Shown here in pieces: positions 10,890 to 31,659 of a stretch of DNA of 64,000 bases. The position numbers were made by a program, and so were the translations under genes. The notes under the pieces are model-generated. The model saw nothing but the letters and a program-made list of their open reading frames with translations, did not search any database and had not been told where the DNA came from. The stretch is from Diplonema japonicum. Taxonomy: Eukaryota; Protista; Euglenozoa: Diplonemea. Each line of letters starts with the position of its first letter. The first letter of the stretch is position 1. The DNA is taken from the NCBI GenBank assembly GCA_964019335.1, contig OZ025662.1, forward strand, positions 434,001 through 498,000, read 5' to 3'.

Positions 10890-10892
<3 letters not shown>

Positions 10893-11513
10893 CCGATGAA
10901 ACGCTCGCAACTTGATGTCCTCAGTGAAATGACTGCGATGACTGGTTCTGACGAAGGCGGCGACATGGCTAGTGCACTGAACAAAATGGAGAATATTATG
11001 AACGGGAAAAAGCAGAAGAAGTCTCAAAAAATAGGGGAGCTGCACTCCCGCCTCCTCACCAAGGTCAAGGATGAACTGAACACAACTTCTGCTCAATGCG
11101 GCACCACACGAGAGTCTTGCCACGAGGCCATGAAGACGATGGTGAAGGATATCAAGACAACCGGTGCTGAGCTGACAGAAATTGAACAGGCTCTGTACCA
11201 GAAATTCCAGGAGATGGAGGACTGTGCAAAGGTGCTCGGGGAAGTGATGAGCACCACGGAGGCGTTGCAGGAGAAGCGCCACACCATCGAGCTGGACCAC
11301 CGGACTGAAGTGAAGGACAATTATAAACAATTGAAGAATAATGTTGAAGATGTTTTGAACCAATGCATGAAGGGACTTTCAAAGGTATTGTTTAAAAAAA
11401 AAAAAGAAAAATTAAAAAAAAAAAAAAATACTCCACTTCGACAGAACTACGAAGCCACTGCACAAATGAAGAGGATGAGACAGTTCCTTCATCAACTTGA
11501 GACTGCTGAATAG
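10890..11513 (+). CDS. Coiled-coil protein of unknown function; 2 exons
   Basis: Heptad-rich ORF. The poly-Lys stretch is an in-frame 60-nt GT-AG intron (11385-11444), giving 187 aa. Confidence 0.75.
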
Positions 11514-11845: not shown

Positions 11846-14800
11846 ATGCTGCCCACGGTCCCCCCCGTGGCCAGGCCAGCATCAGCCCCACCTGTGAGGA
11901 GATGCTTTACAAAAGAAGAACCGGGAATTGAGGAAGCGGAAAAGAGGAAGGCTTACATAAAGAAGCACTCCCTGCACACAGCGCTGAGCAACTCGATGAC
12001 TATGTGTCTGTGCGACCTCCCTGAAGAACCCTGTGTATATCTTGCGACATACCTTCTTGAGGCAGCGTGCACGCAACAGAACGACAATCCCTTGGAGAGC
12101 AATAGAATCACGAATCTTCGAGAAGAAGCTGACCGCTTACGAGGGATCATCGTCAGCGATAACGCCCGCGACCACCTGGCTGCTGCGGAATTCAGTTGCA
12201 GTTCTGGTAAAGCCCCAAGCTGCAGTGTGGGTTCAAAAAACTCCATTTTTTTTACTTCCTGGGATGAGATGCTAAGCACTTCTCTAAGAGGCCACTGGGA
12301 ATGGATGGACCCGTCCATGCTTGCCTCTTTTTCTTCAGTCTTCTATGAGAATATCACAGTTAGAAGCAAGATCGTCGCGCAACACTTCAAGCACTCCGAC
12401 ATGCTCCCAGACGGACAGTCACGCATCCTCACCTTGCTCTACGCCCTGCAGCAGGAACCTGGGTCTCTTTCGTATGTTAAAACCTCCTGCATGGCCAGCG
12501 CTCCCCTTTACACCAACCTCCACCCTACGCACTGCAGCGTCGCGGCATTCTCTTTCATGAGCACGCTTGGCGAATTCTCCCGTAATTATGAGATCGATTT
12601 TCCAAAGCCGGTTGTGCTACTCTGGCTGCGCGCGTATAGTTTTGTTTCATCGCTCCTCAACTCGAATTCTGCTGCATGTTCTTACAACTCGGCGGAGCTA
12701 GCGTGGGTGCTCGGCAAGGACCCAAGCTCCGTGGCCGAAATCGCTAATTTGATAGCGGACGAGGATCTCCTTACAGCCGCGGACTTGTCGGCTCTTGGAG
12801 GCGAGCGTGGCGAACCGAAGGTGGAACTGTTGATATCAGTCCTGCAAGGTTTGAAGACCATGACATTGCTGGTCGACCTTGTGTGGATCATGCCATGGGC
12901 CGCACATTTGCAGCTTTCCGCGGAGGAGTTGATAGAGGGAGGCTCGTCCTATTTCATGCTTCGAGATGAGACCCGCAACTGGGAAACTTTGTGGGACAGC
13001 ACCGTGTCGCTGGTCTTCAACACTGTAGGTATGGAGTCGCTCATCGAGACGTCAACGGAGCTTGGTGTGAAGGTAAGCATGCTTCGGCTCATTGTAAGTA
13101 TCTGGGTGGATATACAAGGTTCGCTGAACGGCAAGCTGTTCCTTGCAGAGGGTGTGGCGTCGAACGTGGTGCTTGATGCGTTCGGTGCGATGCTTTCCTT
13201 CTTAAATGACATGTCGGTTGTCAATGCTGTCGTGGGCGAGCTCTTTGCAGAGCGGCACGCTGGCATCACCGTCAACAACCAAAGTGAGGTGAAGAACAAC
13301 CTCATCAAGCACTTCCTCGGTTGTGGGAAGAAACCCCTCCCAGACGAGAACTCGCTTGCAACCATGTTCGACGTCCTCATTTCGAAGGCCATATGGAGCG
13401 CAAACCTTTCACCCCGGCAGAGCACCGAACTACCCGGATATTATGATCACTCGAGTGAACATTCATACGGCCTCAGCGAGGAGCAGGGCGATGCCATCAA
13501 GCTATCGTGGGACAGCATCGAAGAGAAAGCAGAGTTCGTGCACAGATTGGTGTCGGCCTTGAACCTGGTGAATGTGAACGCACCTATCCTGTACCATATT
13601 CTGGATGGGGTCATCAAGTCGTTTGGAGAATTTCAAGTGCTTGCCCTGCACAGTGATATTAAAAACCACCAACTGCTGGATCAACCAATTCCATCGGAGC
13701 CAGCGATGGCAGCAGTGTTCTCGGACGAACTTCTGAAATACAGCAAGAACCACACACCGTCTGAAACTGCTGTTTGGGTCATTCTCTTCCAATTTCTGCC
13801 TTGGCAGGACACGGCACTTACGCCACCGGCCTCATACCCCTTTATCCTGGCTGTTGCTGCCGCGCCGCACTTGGATGGTTTTCTATTTAACATCATGAAC
13901 CAGCTCCACAAGCACTTCACGGAGGATGAGTTGCCCTGCGTACGTAGCTTCTTCCAAGCGTTGCTGTCCGATAACTTCTCAGAGAACATGATGATTGATA
14001 TGCCGTTCCTTCCAGAGCGGTGTACGCTGCTGTGTGATGTTGTCCGGTCGTGCGCTGACGAAGGCTACGACCACATCACCGGTGTACTCCTTCACTTCTT
14101 AGCAGATATGCTCCCGTCAGTGTTCAACAAAGGGAAGATGAAGCGCAGCTTGTCCTTCGTCTGTCTCGAAACTACAAGCTTCCGGAGACTACGCTGCATG
14201 TGGAGCAAGTTGTCTCTCAAGCCGCATGAGTACACGCGTTACTACAACAAATGGGGCATGGCATCCCTGCTGACATTGCTGGACCCAGACGACGAGCGCT
14301 CCGTTCAAAGGGTTAGCGCCATTCTATCTTCGTTGTTTGACGGTGATGTCAAGTCGCAAGATGGTGTGTCTGCGGTTTTTAACTGTGAAGTGGAAAAGGC
14401 CGCAGCAATGCCGCTGAAGAAGTATGCCATTGCCACATCGTGGCTCCGAACGTTGTACAGCATGGTGCAGGGCTCAGCTACACCTCTGCTACCTGTTTCG
14501 TGGGAAACACAGTTGCGGTTCATTGCCGAGTGTGGCACGATCTTCACCCCGCATTTTATCTCCAGCGTAGCGGAGAAGATGGTGCAGCAAGGCGGCATTT
14601 TCAGCACGGACAGCATGCTTGAAGAACACGTCTGGGAAGCCTGCCTCATCCTGCGCGCCACATGCTCTGCTGGATACAGCCCCTCTCTGGTCATTCAGTA
14701 CGACGTTACCCCCATCTTCGTTTCTGATGAATCTTATAACTCCTTCTGCGATGCCTTTCTCGCCACGCTCGACAGCACCGGTACGAGTCTGCATAACAAG

Positions 14801-17140
14801 GAATGGTGCTCCTTTCTGGAGTTTATCAAATCGTTCGTGAGCGGCGTCCCTCTTGAGGCTACGGGTGGTCCTGTGTGGTTCCATCGAGGCACGATGTGCA
14901 CCTGTATTCTACACTGGACTAGCCTCAGCGACCAACGCATGAGTTTTGCGGACACCGCACTCGACAAAATCTACACGCACAACGTGGCGGGCGAGAAGTG
15001 GAAGTCTGTTAGTAGGATGACAGCGGCGTCTCGCCTGCTACATTTCATGGACATGCAGTTCATGGGGCCTATGATTATGTCAAGTCTGTTAACATGCGCG
15101 GGTGAAAGGTGGCAAGACACTCCTGTGTGCGGTGACGTGGTGGATGCTTTGCTGTATGCGTTGTTCGAAGTTGACTGCACCACGACGAAGTCACAGGTAA
15201 ATGAATGGAAGACCTTGCTGACCCCTGCGTCACTGCTGATGAACGTCCCGCCATTGTACACGAGTGACATGGCACCACCAACGGCTGATGACGTGGTTCT
15301 TGTGAGCAGCTGCACTTTGACAGAGCAGACACGCGAGCAGTTTTGCAGCACAGTGGGTCTCATCGACCCACACCTCCCTAGCGTCGTTGTCGATCGCGCT
15401 CTAGCCGTTCTCATTGACTCCGTGGAAGACTGCAGTGACGCGAACAGTGAGATGCTCAGCTACCTGACACCGGCTTCCTTCAGCAAGAGCTTGAAAATCC
15501 TATCTGTGATGCAAGCTTTGCTGGCAACGATACCTGTCCTGACGCCCGATATGGAACTGGCGTGGCGTAAGATGTTTCGGTACAGGATAGCACCGCAGCT
15601 GCTCTGGGAGCTGGAGCAATCTGACTCAGGTGTTGTGCGCCCACCATGGACCGACGAGGACGCAACAGTGGTGTACACAACGTGGAAGATGAGCGCCATG
15701 AAATTTGCAAAGAGTAGGCAGAGGGTCCGGGAGGTGTTTTGGGAAAGCGTGCGAAGCGCAGACGAAGAAGCCTACGAAACGATGCGCCACACCGACCAGC
15801 ACGCGTTGGTGTTCCAACTGTTCGATATGTTGCCCATGCTGTGCCTGGAGTGGGACAAGAGGGACATGTGGCTCGTGAAGCACGCACCGTACTCAAAGTA
15901 CAGCCGAGTAGCACTACAGGCCTTTTTGAACGTAATGCAACAGATATTACCCGACACCTTCACCGACAAGGTGGCCAGGGCATGGTACGTCGTAGGAGGC
16001 GAAATACTAAAATACCTTGACACCCTCTTCTTGCAGATCCGGGAATTCGGCTTGCGCTGGGAGTACAGTCTGCAACAAGGGTACAGCGGCGACGACACTC
16101 TGATGCACTCCGCAGTCCCGATTGTCCAACTACAAATCGTGCGCACAACGTGGAAACAGATAAACAAGACAAGATTGCTAGCGAACGTCGAACGACAACT
16201 CAAAAAACTGAGCTCGTGTACCGCACACTTCCTATCGGGCCTCATCCTAGAACGCCTCGTCATGCGGGTGTTGGACAGCTTCATAGCCGACTTAGGAAAG
16301 GCTACCATCTCATCCATCGAACGGCAAATGCGGCAAATGTGCATGGATGACTTAACATGGCTTATCAACGGGCAGTACCAGTACATAGTAACATCGATTG
16401 TGAATGGGGTGGTGCTGACACTGAAGGAGGAAGGCTCGAATGTGGAAAAAGAAATTGGAGACGCATGGTTGAAGGTAGTGGGGCTGTTTGCCAAAACGCT
16501 GCAAACAGCACAGCAAGGCTGCCCGAAACTTTCCTTCGAGGAGAGGTTGAAGAGGTTAAAAACGGAAACAATGGGCACAGAGTGGGCAAAAACCGTCACC
16601 ACGCTGCAGCGGAAGAGAGAGTTCACCACCAACGCCATCATATCGAACACGAAAATGAGAGAGGACATAGTGATGGAGATCGTGGACGGGTTGATCCACT
16701 TATGTGAAGCCTTCGGATCGCATACATTGTCTGCCATACACAAAGCGGTTTACAACCTTCGAAAGATTTCCGATAACGTTGCAGACGACGTGTTTGTTCT
16801 TGTTGTTGGGGAGGCGCTGTTCCAGGACCCTGGGCACCATGCTTTCGCGGAGTACTGGACCCGTGTTGCGCTCGCTATACAAACCCTCAATGAGGCTCAA
16901 GAACTTGTAGATGAACCATCTCAAGAGACCATCCTCGCCATTGGGGGCAAACTGTATAATCTAACAGCATGGTTGAGTATACACCCAGGGGGGTCGCAAA
17001 TTTTGGAGTCGCTTACTGGTACCGACGCAACAGTGCAGTTCATGTCCGTTCACGGGAGCAACCCCCGTGTCAAGGAAATGTTGAAATATTTTCAGGTTCA
17101 CGAGCGACCCCGACGCCTTTCAAGATCCGGGAATGGATAG
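11846..17140 (+). CDS. Multidomain protein: Dpy-30/RIIa-like docking motif, tandem divergent globin-like repeats, C-terminal cytochrome b5 heme-binding domain
   Basis: 1764-aa uninterrupted ORF. N-terminal 'AYIKKHSLHTALSNSMTMCLCDLPEEPCVYLATYLL'. Globin A-helix-like 'LSEEQGDAIKLSWDSI', 'WTDEDATVVYTTWK', 'QLQIVRTTWKQI'. H-helix-like 'FTDKVARAW', 'LTPDMELAWRKMF', 'EIGDAWLKVVGLFAKTL'. C-terminal 'IGGKLYNLTAWLSIHPGGSQIL..LTGTDATVQFMSVHG'. Confidence 0.8.
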   Translation: MLPTVPPVARPASAPPVRRCFTKEEPGIEEAEKRKAYIKKHSLHTALSNSMTMCLCDLPEEPCVYLATYLLEAACTQQNDNPLESNRITNLREEADRLRGIIVSDNARDHLAAAEFSCSSGKAPSCSVGSKNSIFFTSWDEMLSTSLRGHWEWMDPSMLASFSSVFYENITVRSKIVAQHFKHSDMLPDGQSRILTLLYALQQEPGSLSYVKTSCMASAPLYTNLHPTHCSVAAFSFMSTLGEFSRNYEIDFPKPVVLLWLRAYSFVSSLLNSNSAACSYNSAELAWVLGKDPSSVAEIANLIADEDLLTAADLSALGGERGEPKVELLISVLQGLKTMTLLVDLVWIMPWAAHLQLSAEELIEGGSSYFMLRDETRNWETLWDSTVSLVFNTVGMESLIETSTELGVKVSMLRLIVSIWVDIQGSLNGKLFLAEGVASNVVLDAFGAMLSFLNDMSVVNAVVGELFAERHAGITVNNQSEVKNNLIKHFLGCGKKPLPDENSLATMFDVLISKAIWSANLSPRQSTELPGYYDHSSEHSYGLSEEQGDAIKLSWDSIEEKAEFVHRLVSALNLVNVNAPILYHILDGVIKSFGEFQVLALHSDIKNHQLLDQPIPSEPAMAAVFSDELLKYSKNHTPSETAVWVILFQFLPWQDTALTPPASYPFILAVAAAPHLDGFLFNIMNQLHKHFTEDELPCVRSFFQALLSDNFSENMMIDMPFLPERCTLLCDVVRSCADEGYDHITGVLLHFLADMLPSVFNKGKMKRSLSFVCLETTSFRRLRCMWSKLSLKPHEYTRYYNKWGMASLLTLLDPDDERSVQRVSAILSSLFDGDVKSQDGVSAVFNCEVEKAAAMPLKKYAIATSWLRTLYSMVQGSATPLLPVSWETQLRFIAECGTIFTPHFISSVAEKMVQQGGIFSTDSMLEEHVWEACLILRATCSAGYSPSLVIQYDVTPIFVSDESYNSFCDAFLATLDSTGTSLHNKEWCSFLEFIKSFVSGVPLEATGGPVWFHRGTMCTCILHWTSLSDQRMSFADTALDKIYTHNVAGEKWKSVSRMTAASRLLHFMDMQFMGPMIMSSLLTCAGERWQDTPVCGDVVDALLYALFEVDCTTTKSQVNEWKTLLTPASLLMNVPPLYTSDMAPPTADDVVLVSSCTLTEQTREQFCSTVGLIDPHLPSVVVDRALAVLIDSVEDCSDANSEMLSYLTPASFSKSLKILSVMQALLATIPVLTPDMELAWRKMFRYRIAPQLLWELEQSDSGVVRPPWTDEDATVVYTTWKMSAMKFAKSRQRVREVFWESVRSADEEAYETMRHTDQHALVFQLFDMLPMLCLEWDKRDMWLVKHAPYSKYSRVALQAFLNVMQQILPDTFTDKVARAWYVVGGEILKYLDTLFLQIREFGLRWEYSLQQGYSGDDTLMHSAVPIVQLQIVRTTWKQINKTRLLANVERQLKKLSSCTAHFLSGLILERLVMRVLDSFIADLGKATISSIERQMRQMCMDDLTWLINGQYQYIVTSIVNGVVLTLKEEGSNVEKEIGDAWLKVVGLFAKTLQTAQQGCPKLSFEERLKRLKTETMGTEWAKTVTTLQRKREFTTNAIISNTKMREDIVMEIVDGLIHLCEAFGSHTLSAIHKAVYNLRKISDNVADDVFVLVVGEALFQDPGHHAFAEYWTRVALAIQTLNEAQELVDEPSQETILAIGGKLYNLTAWLSIHPGGSQILESLTGTDATVQFMSVHGSNPRVKEMLKYFQVHERPRRLSRSGNG

Positions 17141-17144
17141 GATT

Positions 17145-17180
<36 letters not shown>

Positions 17181-17235
17181 CCGTGTTGTTAAAAAAAACT
17201 ATTATGATTATTATTATTATTATTATTTTTTTTTT

Positions 17236-18159
17236 GAAAGCGAGGACAGCTCGGAAGAGGAAGGGGACGAGACACACGAGCGTGTGAACAAGAGACCAAC
17301 AACAGACGAAGTCACATGCGACGCGTGCGGTGCGGAGGAGGACGAGAGCAACATGCTGCGACACGCATTATGGGAATGCAGTGTGGCGAAGGAGGTGCAA
17401 CAGAAGGAAGTACATGCAGAAGTAGTGGCCAGCAAGACGGAAATGCCAATCTGCATGCAGCTACATGGAACGCTCCCGCGTGGTCACCGAACACACCAAC
17501 ACCGGCTGAGGAAGACGCAATACTACCTGCTGGAAGTGGTGGCAAAACGGGACCAGCTTCTCCAGGACAAGAGAAAGCTAGAAACGTACACGACGCACCC
17601 CTGGGAACAGATAACGGAAGGAAACGCTCATGCGCCACCTGAATGGAAGGAGCTGAGGAAGCATGTGAGCGGGAGCCTGATGATGAAGCACGGTGAAGAC
17701 ATCGTCAAGTGGCTCAAAAAGCTGAAGTGGTACGATGGACCGAGGAAGACGACAGTCACCACAATGGAACTCGTACTAGACTTCGAGAACACGCTGGGCG
17801 TCGAGCCGATCACGGGGAAGAAGGGTGATCTAGACATGATACAGAAGAAAGCGCGGAGTTTCCACGGCCTCCTGGAAAGAATCCAAGAAGGGTGGGACAC
17901 AGCACGCATACAGAAGAAGGTCAGAGGCAAGCGGATCTTCCCAGCGGAGAGCAAGAAGAACCACGCGCTTAGAACCATAGGTGCGAAGAAGAGTCTGGGA
18001 TGGAACAGAAGGCCAGTTTTTGCATCAGAGAAAACCAAGAAGGACCTTAAGAAACTGGGCAGAAAGTGGCAAGAAGAAAGGGAGGATACTTTGAGGGAGG
18101 CAACACAGCCAAAAAAGAAAGAAAGGCCGAGGCCCCAGAAGGGAGAAAGGGGTAGATAA
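17236..18159 (+). mobile_element. 3' fragment of a non-LTR retrotransposon (zf-RVT-like knuckle + C-terminal domain)
   Basis: 'CDACGAEEDESNMLRHALWEC' (CxxC...H...C). The downstream region aligns by eye with the C-terminus of the RT element at 53791-56153. Flanked by T-tracts. No RT domain present. Confidence 0.75.
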
Positions 18160-25833: not shown

Positions 25834-28800
25834 ATGTCCTTCTATGTGCCACCAGATGTTGCAACAACGAAATGGGTGAAACCTGATGGCTACAAGAACG
25901 TCCCGTTCTCGGGGACAGCAAGTGAGTACAGGGCGGAATACACAGAGAAACACGTGGACTTTGAAAGGGGCCATGGGACAACAGGGATGAACCCCTTCCA
26001 GCACAGCAGGGAAGCACTAGACGCGAAATCAGTGTATGCAAGAGACTACACTCCGAAAGAGGCAGAGCTGAACCCAAGCATCCACCCAAGCGTAAACCTG
26101 CAGCCAGGGGGCGCCTTCTCAGGAGAGACAACATATGGGCAGACCTACCTCCCATCAGAGGGGGCCTTACAGGTGTCATTCAAGCCAGGGCAAGCGCTTC
26201 CTGAGTTTCGGCCTTTCGATTCCTCCACAACGTACACGCAAGACTACCCTCCGAAGCATGTTGATAGAGAGGGGGCTGTCCGTCCCCATAGCACACTCAC
26301 CCAGGACATCCCTTTCACCGCAAGTACTTCGTACAATGCGGAGTACTTACCTGTTACTGGTGCCCGCCCTGACCTCGCACGCCCACCCTACAACCCCCTC
26401 CCTAACGAGCCCTTCAACGGTGTGTCATCCTACAAAACGGAGTACTCACCTAAGAGAGGGGAACGAGCCGAGCAAGTTGTCCGCCAGCACCAAGTGGCCA
26501 CAGGCGCCTTTGACGGGACCACAACTTATGGTGCTGATTTCCTTCCCAACGACGCATCTCGTCCACCCAGTGCACGCCCTGCACAGTACCTTCCTGAAAG
26601 CAAGCCTTTTGATGGGACTACCACCTATGGTGTTGACTACTTGCCTGGTGAGTTTCAAAAGAGGGAGAGTGCGAAGCCGAAAGATGTCGCTGTGCCGTTC
26701 AGGCCTTTCGATGGCACCACTTCGTACAATGCAGAGTACTCACCCAAGCGGGGGGACAGGGCTGAGCAGGTCGTTCGTCAACACCAGTTGACCACAGGGC
26801 CCTTTGATGGCACTACAACTTATGGTGCCGACTTCCTTCCCAATGACGCATCTCGTCCACCCAGTGCACGTCCTGCACAGTACCTTCCTGAGAGCAAGCC
26901 TTTTGATGGGACTACTACCTATAATGCGGATTACCTGCCAGGTGAGTTTGAACGGAGGGAGAGTGCGAAGCCGAAAAATACCGTCATGCCAAACAGGCCT
27001 TTTGATGGCACCACTTCCTACAACGCGGAGTACTCACCCAAGCGGGGGGACAGGGCTGAGCAGGTTGTGAGGGAACACAAGCCTGTGTCAGGTGGTGCTT
27101 TTGATGGCACCACAACATATGGTGTTGACTACCTGCCAGGTGCGTATGAAAGGAGGGAGAGTGCGAAGCCAAGGAGTGTTGTCACGTCTAGCAAGCCGTT
27201 CGATGGCACCACTTCGTACAATGCAGAGTACTCACCCAAGCGGGGGGACAGGGCTGAGCAAGTAGTGAGGGAACACAAGCCTGTGTCAAGTGGTGCTTTT
27301 GATGGCACTACAACTTATGGTGCTGATTTCCTTCCCAATGACGCATCTCGTCCACCCAGTGCACGTCCTGCACAGTACCTTCCTGAGAGCAAGCCATTTG
27401 ATGGCACCACCACTTATGGTGCGGACTATCTGCCTGGTGAATATGAACGGAGGGAGAGTGCAAAGCCGAAAAATACCGTCATGCCAAACAGGCCTTTCGA
27501 TGGCACCACTTCCTACAATGCGGAGTACTCACCTAAGAGGGGGGACAGGGCTGAGCAAGTAGTGAGGGACCACAAGCCTGTGTCGGGTGGTGCTTTTGAT
27601 GGCACTACCACCTACGGCGCTGACTTCCTTCCCAATGAGACATCTCGTCAGCCTAGCGCACGTCCTGCACAGTACCTCCCTGAGAGCAGGCCATTTGATG
27701 GCACCACCACCTATGGTGCAGACTACTTGCCTGGTGAGTTTGAAAAGAGAGAGAGCGCGAAGCCAAAGCACGTCGCTGTGCCGAGCCGGCCTTTTGATGG
27801 CACCACGTCGTACAATGCAGAGTACTCACCCAAGCGGGGGGACAGGGCTGAGCAAGTAGTGAGGGAACACAAGCCTGTGTCAAGTGGTGCTTTTGACGGT
27901 ACCACCACCTATGGTGCCGACTTCCTTCCCAATGACGCATCTCGTCCACCCAGTGCACGTCCTGCACAGCACCTCCCTGAGAGCAAACCATTTGATGGCA
28001 CCACCACCTATGGTGCTGATTACCTGCCAGGTGCGTATGAGAGGACGGAGAGTGCAAAGCCGAGAAGTACTGTTCTGCCAAACAGGCCTTTTGATGGCAC
28101 CACTTCCTACAACGCGGAGTACTCACCCAAGCGGGGGGACAGGGCTGAGCAGGTCGTCCGCCAGCACCAAGTAAACACTGGTACCTTTGATGGTACTACT
28201 ACATATGGTGCTGATTTCATTCCCAACGCTTATGAAAGGACTTCAAGTGCGAAGCCGAAGGACACTGCCATACCCAACAGGCCGTTTGATGGCACCACAA
28301 CCTACAATGCTGACTTTCTGCCTAGTGAGCTTGAACAACGGGAGAGCGCGAAACCGAAGGACCGTGCCATGCCGTACAGACCTTTCGAAGGCACCACTTC
28401 GTACAATGCAGAGTACTCACCGAAGCGAGGTGAACGGGCTGAACAAGTCGCGAGGGAGCATAAACCTGTGTCTGGTGGTACCTTTGACGGCACCACCACT
28501 TATGGTGCTGACTTCCTTCCCAACGAAGCGTCTCGTCCGCCCAGTTCGCGCCCCACACAGTTCCTTCCTGAGAGCAAGCCATTTGATGGCACCTCCACCT
28601 ACAATCTCAACTACCTTCCCACCACGTACGAGAAGACAGCAAGCGCGAAACCGAAAGATCGTGTTATTCCGAGCCAGTCTTTTGATGGAACTACGTCATA
28701 CAATGCAGAGTACTCACCGAAACGTGGAGACCGGGCTGAGCAAGTAGTGAGAACTCACAAGCCTGTGTCGAGTGGCGCCTTTGACGGCACCACCACCTAC

Positions 28801-31659
28801 GGTGCTGATTTCCTTCCCAACGAAGCATCTCGTCCACCCAGTGCACGTCCTGCACAGTACCTTCCTGAGAGCAAGCCATTTGATGGCACCACCACTTATG
28901 GTGCGGACTACCTCGCCAGTAATTCTGGAAGGCAAATAAGTGCGAAGCCTAAGGACAAGGCTGTGCCATACAGGCCGTTTGAAGGCACCACATCATACAA
29001 TGCGGAGTACTCACCCAAGCGTGGAGACCGGGCTGAGCAAGTCGTCCGCCAGCACCAAGTAAGCTCTGGTACCTTTGATGGCACCACGACATATGGTGCC
29101 GACTTTCTTCCAAGTGCTTATGAAAAGACTATTAGTGCGAAGCCAAAAGACCGCGCTGCACCAAGCCAGCCTTTTGAAGGCACCACATCCTACAATGCAG
29201 AGTACTCACCCAAGCGGGGGGACAGGGCTGAGCAGGTCACGAGGGACCACAAGCCTGTGTCGAGTGGAGCCTTTGACGGGACCACAACTTATGGTGCCGA
29301 CTTCCTTCCCAATGACGCATCTCGTCCACCCAGTGCACGTCCTGCACAGTACCTCCCTGAGAGCAAGCCATTTGATGGCACCACCACTTATGGTGCGGAC
29401 TATCTGCCTGGTGAATTTCAAAAGAGGGAGAGTGCAAAGCCGAAAAATACCGTCATGCCAAACAGGCCTTTTGATGGCACCACTTCCTACAACGCGGAGT
29501 ACTCACCTAAGAGGGGGGACAGGGCTGAGCAAGTAGTGAGGGAACACAAGCCTGTGTCGGGTGGTGCTTTTGATGGCACTACCACCTACGGCGCTGACTT
29601 CCTTCCCAATGAGACATCTCGTCAGCCTAGCGCACGTCCTGCACAGTACCTCCCTGAGAGCAAGCCATTTGATGGGACGTCCACATACAACGCCGACTAC
29701 ATTCCTAGCGCTTACGGGAAGCCTCAAAGTGCAAAGCCAAAGGATCGTGCTGTCTTGAGCCAGCCTTTTGAGGGCACCACATCATACAATGCAGAGTACT
29801 CACCCAAGAGAGGAGAGAGAACTGAGCAGGTTATCCGCCAGCACCAGGTGACCACTGGTGCCTTTGATGGCACCACCACCTATGGCTCCGATTACTTGCT
29901 GAGCACCTACGAAAGGACTACCAGCGCAAAGCCAAAAGACCGTGCCATGCCAAGCCAGCCATTCGATGGCACCACTTCGTACAATGCAGAGTACTCACCT
30001 AAGAGGGGGGACAGGGCTGAGCAAGTCACGAGGGACCACAAGCCTGTGTCGGGTGGTGCTTTTGATGGCACCACTACTTATGGTGCTGACTTCCTTCCCA
30101 ATGAGACATCTCGTCAGCCTAGCGCGCGTCCTGCACAGTACCTTCCTGAGAGCAGGCCATTTGATGGTACTTCTACTTACAACGCTGACTTCCTAGCCAA
30201 CGACCCTGCAAAACGAGTTAGCGCGAAGCCAAAAGACCGTGCGTTGCCGTTCAGGCCTTTCGATGGCACCACGTCGTACAATGCAGAGTACTCACCCAAG
30301 CGGGGGGACAGGGCTGAACAGGTTGCGAGGGACCACAAGCCTGTGTCTAGAGGACTCTTCGATGGCAACACCACCTACGGGTCAGACTACCAGCCCAGCG
30401 CGTATCAGAAGAGGGAAAGTGCGAAGCCGAAAGACAAAGCCTTCCCAAGCCAGCCCTTCGATGGCACCACTTCGTACAATGCAGAGTACTCACCTAAGAG
30501 GGGAGACAGGGCTGAGCAAGTAACGAGGCAACACAAGCCTGTGTCGGGTGGTGCTTTTGATGGCACCACTACTTATGGTGCTGACTTCCTTCCCAATGAG
30601 ACATCTCGTCAGCCCAGTGCACGTCCTGCACAGTACCTCCCTGAGAGCAGGCCATTTGATGGCACCACCACTTATGGTGCGGACTATCTCGTCAGTGATC
30701 GTGAAAGGCGAGAAAGTGCGAAGCCGAAGGACAAGGCTGTGCCATACAGGCCGTTTGAAGGCACCACATCATACAATGCGGAGTACTCACCCAAACGTGG
30801 AGATAGATCGGAACAGGTTGCGAGGGAGCACAAGCCTGTGTCGAGTGGGCGGTTCGACGACAGGACGACATACGGCAGCGACTACATGAGGAACAAGGCG
30901 GAGAGGAGGGCGAGCTCACGGCCGCCGCAGTCGGTGATGAAGGAGCGCGCATTCGACGGGACGACAAGCTACCAAGAGCAGTACACAAAAAAGAAAACAG
31001 AGCGGTCGAGGTCTGTTGGGGCTGGAGACAGAAGGATGTCCAGCGGGCCCTTCAGCGGGAACACAACATATGCCAGTGATTACCAGCAGAAGGTAAGTCA
31101 GAGGAGGGGGAGTGTTAGACCATCGACAAGCTCCGTGAGCCGACAAAGGTTCGAAGGGGTGAGCTCGTACCAATCTGACTATGGCAATGTGCTGTTGTCA
31201 CCAAAGCAGCAAGCATGGGACAGAGATGCAACACCCTCCAGGTCCTCACGGAGGCATGTGGGAGGGGGGGATTCCTTCCCGTTCAATGGCAGGGATGATC
31301 TTACGTCTTCCAAAAGACGTCGGGCCTCAACGCCAGGGCCGAGGAGCTCTGACTTCAAGGTCCACGAATTTCAGGTATTCAGGTCCCATACTCCAACAAA
31401 AACGAAACCTTACAGAGCGAGACGTCATACCAGCAGCAGTACAGCCAGAAGCCTCTTACCCCTCAGACATCTCGTGCCAGGGGTCGGTCCTCAAGCGTTT
31501 TGCCGAGCACTCCTTTCGAAGGGTATTTATTTTCTTCTCCCTCTCTTAGACACTTTTAACAGGAAATCGAGCTACTCTGCCGATTTTTCGCCCAAAACAG
31601 GCTCCCGCGCGCCTCGCGTGAAGCCTAAAGACAACAATATCCTGCCCTTGTCGCGTTAG
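25834..31659 (+). CDS. Giant SAXO/FAM154/MAP6(STOP)-type microtubule-stabilising protein with tandem Mn-like motifs; 3 exons
   Basis: Over 50 repeats of ~33 aa with core F-[DE]-G-T-T-[ST]-Y-x-x-[DE]-[YF]-x-P. Introns 31375-31415 and 31523-31562 restore two more repeats (FQSETSYQQQY, FEGKSSYSADF). About 1914 aa after splicing. Confidence 0.85.
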   Translation: MSFYVPPDVATTKWVKPDGYKNVPFSGTASEYRAEYTEKHVDFERGHGTTGMNPFQHSREALDAKSVYARDYTPKEAELNPSIHPSVNLQPGGAFSGETTYGQTYLPSEGALQVSFKPGQALPEFRPFDSSTTYTQDYPPKHVDREGAVRPHSTLTQDIPFTASTSYNAEYLPVTGARPDLARPPYNPLPNEPFNGVSSYKTEYSPKRGERAEQVVRQHQVATGAFDGTTTYGADFLPNDASRPPSARPAQYLPESKPFDGTTTYGVDYLPGEFQKRESAKPKDVAVPFRPFDGTTSYNAEYSPKRGDRAEQVVRQHQLTTGPFDGTTTYGADFLPNDASRPPSARPAQYLPESKPFDGTTTYNADYLPGEFERRESAKPKNTVMPNRPFDGTTSYNAEYSPKRGDRAEQVVREHKPVSGGAFDGTTTYGVDYLPGAYERRESAKPRSVVTSSKPFDGTTSYNAEYSPKRGDRAEQVVREHKPVSSGAFDGTTTYGADFLPNDASRPPSARPAQYLPESKPFDGTTTYGADYLPGEYERRESAKPKNTVMPNRPFDGTTSYNAEYSPKRGDRAEQVVRDHKPVSGGAFDGTTTYGADFLPNETSRQPSARPAQYLPESRPFDGTTTYGADYLPGEFEKRESAKPKHVAVPSRPFDGTTSYNAEYSPKRGDRAEQVVREHKPVSSGAFDGTTTYGADFLPNDASRPPSARPAQHLPESKPFDGTTTYGADYLPGAYERTESAKPRSTVLPNRPFDGTTSYNAEYSPKRGDRAEQVVRQHQVNTGTFDGTTTYGADFIPNAYERTSSAKPKDTAIPNRPFDGTTTYNADFLPSELEQRESAKPKDRAMPYRPFEGTTSYNAEYSPKRGERAEQVAREHKPVSGGTFDGTTTYGADFLPNEASRPPSSRPTQFLPESKPFDGTSTYNLNYLPTTYEKTASAKPKDRVIPSQSFDGTTSYNAEYSPKRGDRAEQVVRTHKPVSSGAFDGTTTYGADFLPNEASRPPSARPAQYLPESKPFDGTTTYGADYLASNSGRQISAKPKDKAVPYRPFEGTTSYNAEYSPKRGDRAEQVVRQHQVSSGTFDGTTTYGADFLPSAYEKTISAKPKDRAAPSQPFEGTTSYNAEYSPKRGDRAEQVTRDHKPVSSGAFDGTTTYGADFLPNDASRPPSARPAQYLPESKPFDGTTTYGADYLPGEFQKRESAKPKNTVMPNRPFDGTTSYNAEYSPKRGDRAEQVVREHKPVSGGAFDGTTTYGADFLPNETSRQPSARPAQYLPESKPFDGTSTYNADYIPSAYGKPQSAKPKDRAVLSQPFEGTTSYNAEYSPKRGERTEQVIRQHQVTTGAFDGTTTYGSDYLLSTYERTTSAKPKDRAMPSQPFDGTTSYNAEYSPKRGDRAEQVTRDHKPVSGGAFDGTTTYGADFLPNETSRQPSARPAQYLPESRPFDGTSTYNADFLANDPAKRVSAKPKDRALPFRPFDGTTSYNAEYSPKRGDRAEQVARDHKPVSRGLFDGNTTYGSDYQPSAYQKRESAKPKDKAFPSQPFDGTTSYNAEYSPKRGDRAEQVTRQHKPVSGGAFDGTTTYGADFLPNETSRQPSARPAQYLPESRPFDGTTTYGADYLVSDRERRESAKPKDKAVPYRPFEGTTSYNAEYSPKRGDRSEQVAREHKPVSSGRFDDRTTYGSDYMRNKAERRASSRPPQSVMKERAFDGTTSYQEQYTKKKTERSRSVGAGDRRMSSGPFSGNTTYASDYQQKVSQRRGSVRPSTSSVSRQRFEGVSSYQSDYGNVLLSPKQQAWDRDATPSRSSRRHVGGGDSFPFNGRDDLTSSKRRRASTPGPRSSDFKVHEFQVFRSHTPTKTKPYRARRHTSSSTARSLLPLRHLVPGVGPQAFCRALLSKGIYFLLPLLDTFNRKSSYSADFSPKTGSRAPRVKPKDNNILPLSR
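26430..30890 (+). repeat. Coding tandem repeat, ~99-nt unit with higher-order ~297-nt (sometimes ~198-nt) period
   Basis: Recurrent 'TACAATGCAGAGTACTCACCCAAGCGGGGGGACAGGGCTGAGCA' and 'GATGGCACCAC' blocks inside the SAXO-like CDS. Confidence 0.9.

Follow-up and report, generated by a model that had tools for sequence, protein, structure and literature searches.

Tandem globin-fold units between a Dpy-30-like motif and a cytochrome b5 domain in a predicted giant protein of Diplonema japonicum

The stretch of DNA analysed here (the window) comprises 64,000 nucleotides of the Diplonema japonicum genome (assembly GCA_964019335.1, contig OZ025662.1, positions 434,001 to 498,000), and the gene at window positions 11846..17140 on the forward strand encodes a predicted protein of 1764 amino acids (aa). 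A borderline Dpy-30/RIIa-type dimerisation-docking (D/D) motif near the N-terminus is followed by about twelve helical units, of which several are recognisable as globins, and a cytochrome b5 domain forms the C-terminus. In this protein the 3-on-3 globin fold appears to have been duplicated into about twelve copies and to have lost its haem ligand afterwards. Our best reading, which we consider probable, is that of a docked pseudo-globin scaffold with one b5 haem. The earlier note on this DNA, made from the sequence alone, had proposed a Dpy-30-like motif, tandem globin-fold units and a cytochrome b5 domain, and this architecture was borne out by Pfam, by profile comparisons and by AlphaFold2 (AF2) models searched with Foldseek. 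The function that the note attached to it, a self-reducing O2/NO sensor with several haems, is not supported, because such a sensor needs haem-binding globins.

A family of five giant proteins

The open reading frame (ORF) is complete and intronless, running from an ATG start to a stop codon without an internal stop. When 1.84 billion cluster representatives were searched by phmmer with residues 470-1669 as the query, four proteins only were returned. These are P0001 (Diplonema papillatum KAJ9467617.1, DIPPA_06087, annotated 'hypothetical protein'; 2002 aa, E 2e-61, 28% identity to the searched stretch) and three unnamed ENA proteins, P0002 (1807 aa, E 1.1e-36, 24%), P0003 (1883 aa, E 1.9e-21, 26%) and P0004 (2131 aa, E 2.1e-21, 26%). 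The five proteins could be aligned from their first residues through to the end, and this five-sequence alignment was used throughout our analysis. A word-index protein search gave no match with the whole protein or with the alignment, which is a limitation of the word index; a metagenome scan with the alignment gave 81 pattern matches and no relatives, and the ESM Atlas gave no usable match for the whole protein. A scan of the 62.5-Mb genome (132 contigs) found no paralogue of the central region elsewhere. Judged by its sequence relatives, this giant protein is lineage-restricted and belongs to a rare family with five known members.

That the frame arose by chance, or is a mis-assembled fusion of separate genes, is hardly credible. 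The open frame spans 1764 codons, the four homologues come from other assemblies and align over their full length with both start and end conserved, and the whole stretch is contained in five public sequencing runs from two studies. None of these five runs is on record as RNA, which is the one point in favour of a chance or chimeric frame, and we regard that explanation as effectively refuted already. The GC content is 0.48-0.56 within the ORF against 0.28-0.39 in its flanks.

Globin-fold units of the central region

The middle of the protein was cut into twelve units (U1 to U12) using the AF2 helices and the conserved tryptophan pattern of the alignment. The units are all-helical and 110-150 aa long, and in most of them the first helix has a '..W' of A-helix type and the last an '(A)W/F' of H-helix type. 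Tryptophans W260, W383, W420, W555, W644, W866, W1024, W1121, W1240, W1436, W1541, W1580 and W1671 are invariant in the five proteins. Recurrent globin-type units had been noticed before, with about seven picked out and room for some ten or eleven, and our cut extends this count to about twelve.

The evidence that these units are related to globins comes first from profile comparisons. As a reference we used the canonical PF00042 domains of the same genome, which lie in four open frames of 1140-1185 aa (loci L009 to L012 on contigs C104, C49, C103 and C37 of the genome, G000) that score 60-67 bits and have both the F8 and the E7 histidine. When sliding 150-residue windows of the alignment were compared with this reference using hhalign, the strongest peak lay at about residues 1426-1558 (score 41.8, probability 88-89%, 121 columns), followed by peaks at about 140-270 (36.9), 950-1000 (34.4), 430-510 (29) and 1370-1410 (25). 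The controls reached at most 21.1 with reversed columns and 17.9 with shuffled columns. Taken by unit, canonical globins were matched above control by U1 (36), U3 (29), U7 (28), U10 (25) and U11 (42), and an all-against-all comparison of the units, for which the reversed-control maximum was 20.9, linked U1 with U11 (21) and U12 (23), U3 with U11 (23), U6 with U8 (31) and U9 (29), and U7 with U9 (23). Profile comparison thus points to a direct globin relationship for U1, U3, U7, U11 and, weakly, U10, and to an indirect one for U6, U9 and U12, which are linked to globins only via internal repeats. The three stretches that the earlier note had singled out as clearest fall within U10, U11 and U3, each a unit with an above-control globin signal.

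Searches with hidden Markov models (HMMs) point the same way. A family HMM run against PDB sequences found cytochrome b5 first and globins next (E 0.002-0.004), among them flavohaemoglobin 3ozu at residues 424-487 in U3 (E 0.0018) and, over nearly its whole chain, Hell's Gate globin 3s1i at residues 1432-1553 in U11 (E 0.0033). Pfam Globin scored 26.1 bits on P0004 (cut-off 22) over the part corresponding to residues 922-995 in U7, and 17.3 bits on P0001 over the part corresponding to residues 1472-1529 in U11. With its filters off, an hmmsearch using the HMM of canonical globins found weak matches on all five proteins in U1, U3, U6, U7, U8, U10, U11 and U12, mostly at the within-unit position expected from the HMM coordinates.

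Structural models were obtained with AF2 from the five-sequence alignment, run in two halves, and the C-terminal half (880-1764) reached a mean predicted local distance difference test (pLDDT) of 63. The Foldseek matches with a probability of 1.0 were globins and b5, including a 282-residue tandem di-alpha haemoglobin matched over 284 columns; VIA-align placed U7 and U8 together (model residues 7..257) on both tandem domains of di-alpha haemoglobin 1o1j/1o1m. The modelled units have the 3-on-3 alpha-helical sandwich, with helices A, B and E over F, G and H in about 120-150 residues, and follow the normal A-to-H order. Their best superpositions are with 3/3 globins of full length (Hb alpha, neuroglobin, cytoglobin and flavohaemoglobin), at 6-15% sequence identity. 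On these models U1, U8 and U11 are predicted to have the globin fold, as is U7 via the tandem alignment, and an ARM/HEAT repeat was rejected for the four. The globin check that had been suggested for the central units therefore came out in favour of globin folds for U1, U7, U8 and U11, but U2, U4 and U5 showed no above-control link to globins in the all-against-all comparison.

The units differ accordingly in how firmly they can be assigned. In U1 (residues 138-281; 12257..12688, this and all following unit coordinates on the + strand) the predicted globin fold has W151 in the A helix and the invariant W260 in the H helix, and in U8 (1005-1140; 14858..15265) both positions are invariant (W1024 and W1121). 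U11 (1418-1562; 16097..16531) carries the strongest of the unit scores, and U7 (886-1004; 14501..14857) is classed as a globin from the Pfam match on its homologue and hhalign scores of 28-34. U3 (396-525; 13031..13420) appears globin-like over its E to H helices, with profile matches and the invariant A-helix W420; U10 (1266-1417; 15641..16096) appears so over its G-H helices, with an HMM match at residues 1354-1390.

Among the indirectly linked units, U6 (773-885; 14162..14500) is probably globin-like from its internal repeats, having an A-helix 'SWRRL', the invariant W866 and weak in-register matches to the canonical globin HMM in P0001, P0003 and P0004. U9 (1141-1265; 15266..15640) has no direct globin match and is taken as globin-like only by its links to U6 and U7; it is the most conserved unit of the family (DPTCP, EEC.DA and AWR.FF.FRIAPQLLWE) and is modelled with a pLDDT of 64-87. 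U12 (1563-1692; 16532..16921) is helical and weakly globin-like, with invariant W1580 and W1671 and a pLDDT of 32-51. The remaining units are U2 (282-395; 12689..13030), a helical unit ending in a W379/W383 motif and modelled with a pLDDT below 50, U5 (662-772; 13829..14161), a helical unit cut by its AF2 helices and tryptophan pattern, and U4 (540-661; 13463..13828). The last is a short candidate globin-like unit with a textbook A helix (LSEEQGDAIKLSW555) and invariant H608, P616 and W644. It can be placed in register with U6, U8 and U11, from A-helix Trp to A-helix Trp and from H-helix Trp to H-helix Trp, at scores of 17-20, which is the level of the controls.

Several observations weigh against our best reading. 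Pfam Globin (PF00042, 22 bits) found nothing on this protein, whole or in ten pieces, and phmmer searches of single units against the PDB (U4, U10 and U11-U12) returned no globin. The N-terminal half of the model (residues 1-900) had a mean pLDDT of 43.5, with only residues 150-270 confident. Given this poor model and the missing profile links of U2, U4 and U5, a count of twelve globins in twelve units is an extrapolation. The alignment holds only five sequences that are 21-28% identical, so that single assignments of the F8 position could be a few residues off. At the C-terminus, P0001 and P0002 carry the cytochrome b5 domain and P0003 and P0004 stop where it would start; the domain may not be universal in the family, or the gene models of these two proteins may be truncated. 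Finally, DIPPA_06087 is not among the P. papillatum proteomics rows listed in the accessible part of S1 Data of PMC12697944, where neighbouring identifiers are present.

An alternative is a mixed central region with about five to six globin-derived units only, in which U2, U4, U5 and perhaps also U9 and U12 would be helical bundles or HEAT/TPR-like repeats of other origin, so that globin relics would be embedded in an otherwise generic helical scaffold. In its favour, U2, U4 and U5 have no above-control profile link, and in the ESM Atlas the look-alikes of residues 530-780 are of HEAT/TPR type, with scores up to 0.91. However, these are only generic helical-repeat look-alikes that share 94-113 of 256 features, their family is flagged as probably wrong, and the Z-8 matches fall in a region with a pLDDT below 50. 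The same H-helix-type (A)W/F motif also ends every unit at a spacing of about 106-160 residues, the register of U4 matches that of U6, U8 and U11, and U6, U9 and U12 are linked to confirmed units. A mixed scaffold is on balance unlikely, and we retain a chain of about twelve globin-fold or globin-like units as the more probable reading.

Haem ligands, terminal modules and proposed mechanism

The canonical F8 His, E7 His and two Trp positions were mapped onto the units through the hhalign alignments. In U1 the F8 column holds Y222 (YFFYF across the five proteins), in U8 it holds W1089 within an invariant CAGERWQ motif (WWWWW), in U7 P956 (PPVCG) and in U6 S824 (SQGHQ). In U11 it holds D1502 (DHHLL), with His in P0001 and P0002 and Leu in P0003 and P0004. 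A family-wide distal His was found in none of the units mapped. Since Tyr/Phe, Trp, Asp or Pro stands in place of the proximal His, most units are likely to be haem-free 'pseudo-globins', in agreement with the suggestion that most units lack this residue. H471 in U3, put forward previously as a possible F8 His, was rejected because it is not conserved and belongs to a 3-residue insert that none of the four homologues has; H1346 in U10, located at a deletion that only this protein shows, was rejected as well for lack of conservation.

The only family-invariant candidate for a proximal His is H608 in U4 (codon 13667..13669, +). It is followed by P616 at +8 and W644 at +36, both invariant, and the corresponding residues in the canonical globin of L009 stand at +8 and +37. 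From the A helix to H608, U4 falls short by about 25 residues, and in the hhalign alignment of U4 with U11 the histidine falls two residues off the F8 column. We regard H608 as a possible, though not the probable, proximal ligand, and by sequence at most one of the twelve units of this protein could have a usable canonical proximal His.

The mapping bears directly on the alternative that the protein is a functional multi-haem poly-haemoglobin. Several units would then bind haem through non-canonical ligands or a shifted His, b5 would keep them reduced, and the docked protein would sense or detoxify O2/NO. The globin fold and homology are real, H608 has haemoglobin-like spacing to P616 and W644, a His does occupy the F8 column of U11 in two homologues, and cytochrome b5 is an established reductant of globins (see also PMC13034514). 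Set against this are the F8 residues themselves (in U8 an invariant Trp), the missing distal His, the position of all units of this protein under every globin HMM threshold, and the single unit at most in which a canonical proximal His is usable. We consider a multi-haem protein distinctly unlikely. A pseudo-globin scaffold with a single b5 haem, our preferred reading, places the redox centre in the C-terminal domain instead.

This cytochrome b5 haem-binding domain occupies residues 1693-1749 (16922..17092, +) and matches PF00173 with E 1.2e-11 and 44.9 bits (cut-off 23.7). Its best PDB match by phmmer is rat outer-membrane b5 (1.6e-09), and the AF2 model of the domain superposes on the same protein in Foldseek with a template modelling (TM) score of 0.55-0.59, a root-mean-square deviation of 2.5-2.9 A and 42-47% identity. 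The two axial histidines are H1713 (IHPGGS; nucleotides 16982-16984) and H1736 (SVHGS; nucleotides 17051-17053), 23 residues apart, and both are kept in P0001 and P0002. They lie where the earlier note had placed the two haem ligands. From its sequence b5 is the only module of the protein that can confidently be expected to bind haem.

The N-terminus combines a proline-rich motif with the docking motif. The first 17 residues (MLPTVPPVARPASAPPV; 11846..11896, +) follow the pattern MLP.AP...RPASAPP, in which M1, P3 and P6 are invariant and RPASAPP is near-invariant; this is strikingly conserved although the proteins are otherwise only 21-28% identical, and the motif may serve in targeting or in SH3-type binding. 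Residues 35-73 (11948..12064, +) form the Dpy-30/RIIa-type motif. With a Pfam PF05186 cut-off of 22 bits, the motif scored 16.8 bits in the whole protein, 21.4 on a 130-aa N-terminal piece and 23.1 in a six-frame scan of the genome, where it was the 8th best Dpy-30 match; P0004 scored 14 bits. The best PDB sequence matches were weak, namely the PKA RI-alpha D/D domain 2ezw (E 0.16), with YIKKHSLHTALSNSMTMCLCDLPEEPCVYLATYLLE aligned to residues 6-41 of PKA RI-alpha D/D, and next the N-terminus of 7n6g_6G, a chain named 'Phosphopyruvate hydratase' (enolase; E 0.81). A helix-loop-helix of about 40 aa with a conserved pattern of hydrophobic residues and prolines is nonetheless present (AF2 helices 43-57 and 62-80, at low pLDDT), and eleven positions are invariant in the five proteins (K35, Y37, I38, L43, H44, L47, C54, L55, P59, P62 and L70). 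The Dpy-30/RIIa-type start proposed for this protein can thus be accepted as a borderline case, at threshold level and conserved throughout the family. Between this motif and U1 lies a helical linker (residues 75-137; 12068..12256, +), modelled as helices 62-116 at low pLDDT, which varies in length and has large insertions in P0001, P0003 and P0004 that make it up to about 300 aa longer.

A second protein of the genome resembles this region. Locus L004 (G000:C19:525267-528455) contains an ORF (1162-2865, +) for a 567-aa WW-domain protein that is 46% identical (E 6.8e-6) to residues 32-94, that is, to the Dpy-30-like motif and the next helix. Pfam gives no Dpy-30 match there at E <= 0.01.

From these modules a mechanism can be proposed. 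As a fold for docking, the D/D domain is ancient (PMC8339350), and by analogy the Dpy-30/RIIa-type motif would form a four-helix D/D homodimer clamped on the amphipathic helix of a partner. The roughly twelve tandem 3-on-3 globin-fold units, which would have originated by internal duplication, may act as structural or interaction beads of an extended scaffold, haem-free with the possible exception of U4 and its invariant His608. Elongated and docked in this manner, the scaffold could present, at one fixed place in the cell, the redox-active haem of b5 and perhaps that of one globin unit. The b5 haem would accept electrons from a b5-reductase-type flavoprotein.

A candidate for such a donor is present in the same genome. 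Locus L026 (G000:C33:456256-459363) has an open frame (1483-2793, +) for a 437-aa protein with a Dpy-30-like motif of 19.9 bits (below the cut-off), a CDGSH domain, FAD_binding_6 and NAD_binding_1. The combination of the two flavoprotein domains with CDGSH suggests a b5-reductase-type flavoprotein, and since it carries a Dpy-30-like tag it could dock together with the globin-chain protein. From its sequence a role of L026 as a co-docked electron donor is plausible, and a flagellar site of the globin-chain protein may be suggested by analogy with CYB5D1 and the Dpy-30-domain spoke proteins (see below).

A fuller version of this idea is an anchored assembly for electron transfer and redox sensing, in which the Dpy-30 motifs of both proteins would share one amphipathic-helix scaffold, located for instance in the flagellum or the feeding apparatus. 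Electrons would pass from NAD(P)H to the reductase, then to the b5 haem and on to a single haem globin (U4, His608), and the eleven haem-less globins would serve as a rigid spacer or a ligand-binding rod. In this complete form we think the proposal unlikely; were it true, the anchored assembly would put the globin fold to a new use, that of a structural repeat.

Comparison with known systems and genomic neighbourhood

Globins are among the best-studied protein folds, and diplonemids are protists that are very abundant in the ocean and for which hardly any functional annotation exists. To our knowledge, tandem globin arrays occur only as invertebrate haem-binding O2 carriers or as protist truncated haemoglobins. 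The multi-domain haemoglobins of invertebrates are made of haem-binding domains, carry O2 and are not known to have docking or b5 modules. Like these proteins, of which the 9-domain haemoglobin of Artemia is an example (PMC4503718), the protein described here has a tandem series of many globin-fold domains, each about 120-150 aa long, attributed to internal duplication. It differs from the polymeric haemoglobins in that the proximal His has gone in nearly all units, in its low identity to globins (6-15%) and in its Dpy-30 and b5 caps; an F8 His in each tandem haem-binding domain, as in a polymeric haemoglobin, was not found here. Tandem globin units are also present in truncated haemoglobins of the multi-unit type known from protists (Hade et al. 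2017, as cited in PMC7475203), which are 2-on-2 and are described there as haemoglobins, whereas the units here fit 3/3 globins best and lack the His. The non-haem globin sensor at the N-terminus of the stressosome protein RsbR (PDB 2bnl and 7b0u) is a single bacterial domain fused to STAS, with no tandem array, b5 or D/D module.

Other proteins share parts of the design. Androglobin (ADGB) is a large chimera with a degenerate globin that is tied to cilia and flagella, and its euglenozoan homologues are without any globin domain (PMC13331133). Its defining features are a calpain-like domain, a single globin with circular permutation and an IQ motif. This protein has none of the three, and an androglobin identity was rejected since there was no Pfam match to calpain, androglobin or IQ at E <= 1 and no permutation. 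CYB5D1 has a b5-type haem domain and is an axonemal redox switch (PMC13505981), and the Dpy-30-domain radial-spoke proteins RSP2/RSP23 dock on amphipathic helices of RSP3 (PMC3494852). Homology to these proteins is confined to the two small domains, and they are without globin units. Our literature searches found no paper combining globin, cytochrome b5 and Dpy-30, none linking diplonemids with such a globin and none naming DIPPA_06087; consistent with what the earlier note had supposed about characterised proteins, no searchable paper describes the design. The protein is set apart from all the systems compared by its tandem 3/3 folds, the systematic loss of the proximal His, and the Dpy-30 and b5 caps.

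If confirmed, the protein would show that the globin fold can be reused as a structural repeat, and its units would provide a natural 'haem-loss' variant series for studying the stability of the fold without haem. The findings also point to a docked redox module in diplonemids, in a family whose only named member is annotated as hypothetical.

The long ORFs of the window all lie on the + strand and encode ordinary eukaryotic proteins (MIF4G/MA3, WD40, SAXO, ankyrin, kinase and a TrpF-TrpB fusion). Directly downstream of the gene, a Lys/Glu-rich frame of about 250 aa (17401-18159, +) follows a T-rich tract (about 17170-17250); it has a high AT skew, matches no Pfam family and is possibly a separate small gene. 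It lies in the frame of ORF 16969-18159, which overlaps the end of the gene and was considered as a C-terminal extension of the protein; this was rejected because the ORF is in another frame, lies behind the T-rich tract and has no family match. Upstream, a 207-aa ORF (10890-11513, +) has weak, coiled-coil-type Pfam matches (Leu_zip and Prefoldin_2), each below its cut-off. Further downstream, a 1941-aa ORF (25834-31659, +) contains seven stretches of SAXO1-2, a stabiliser of axonemal microtubules (E 1.3e-68).

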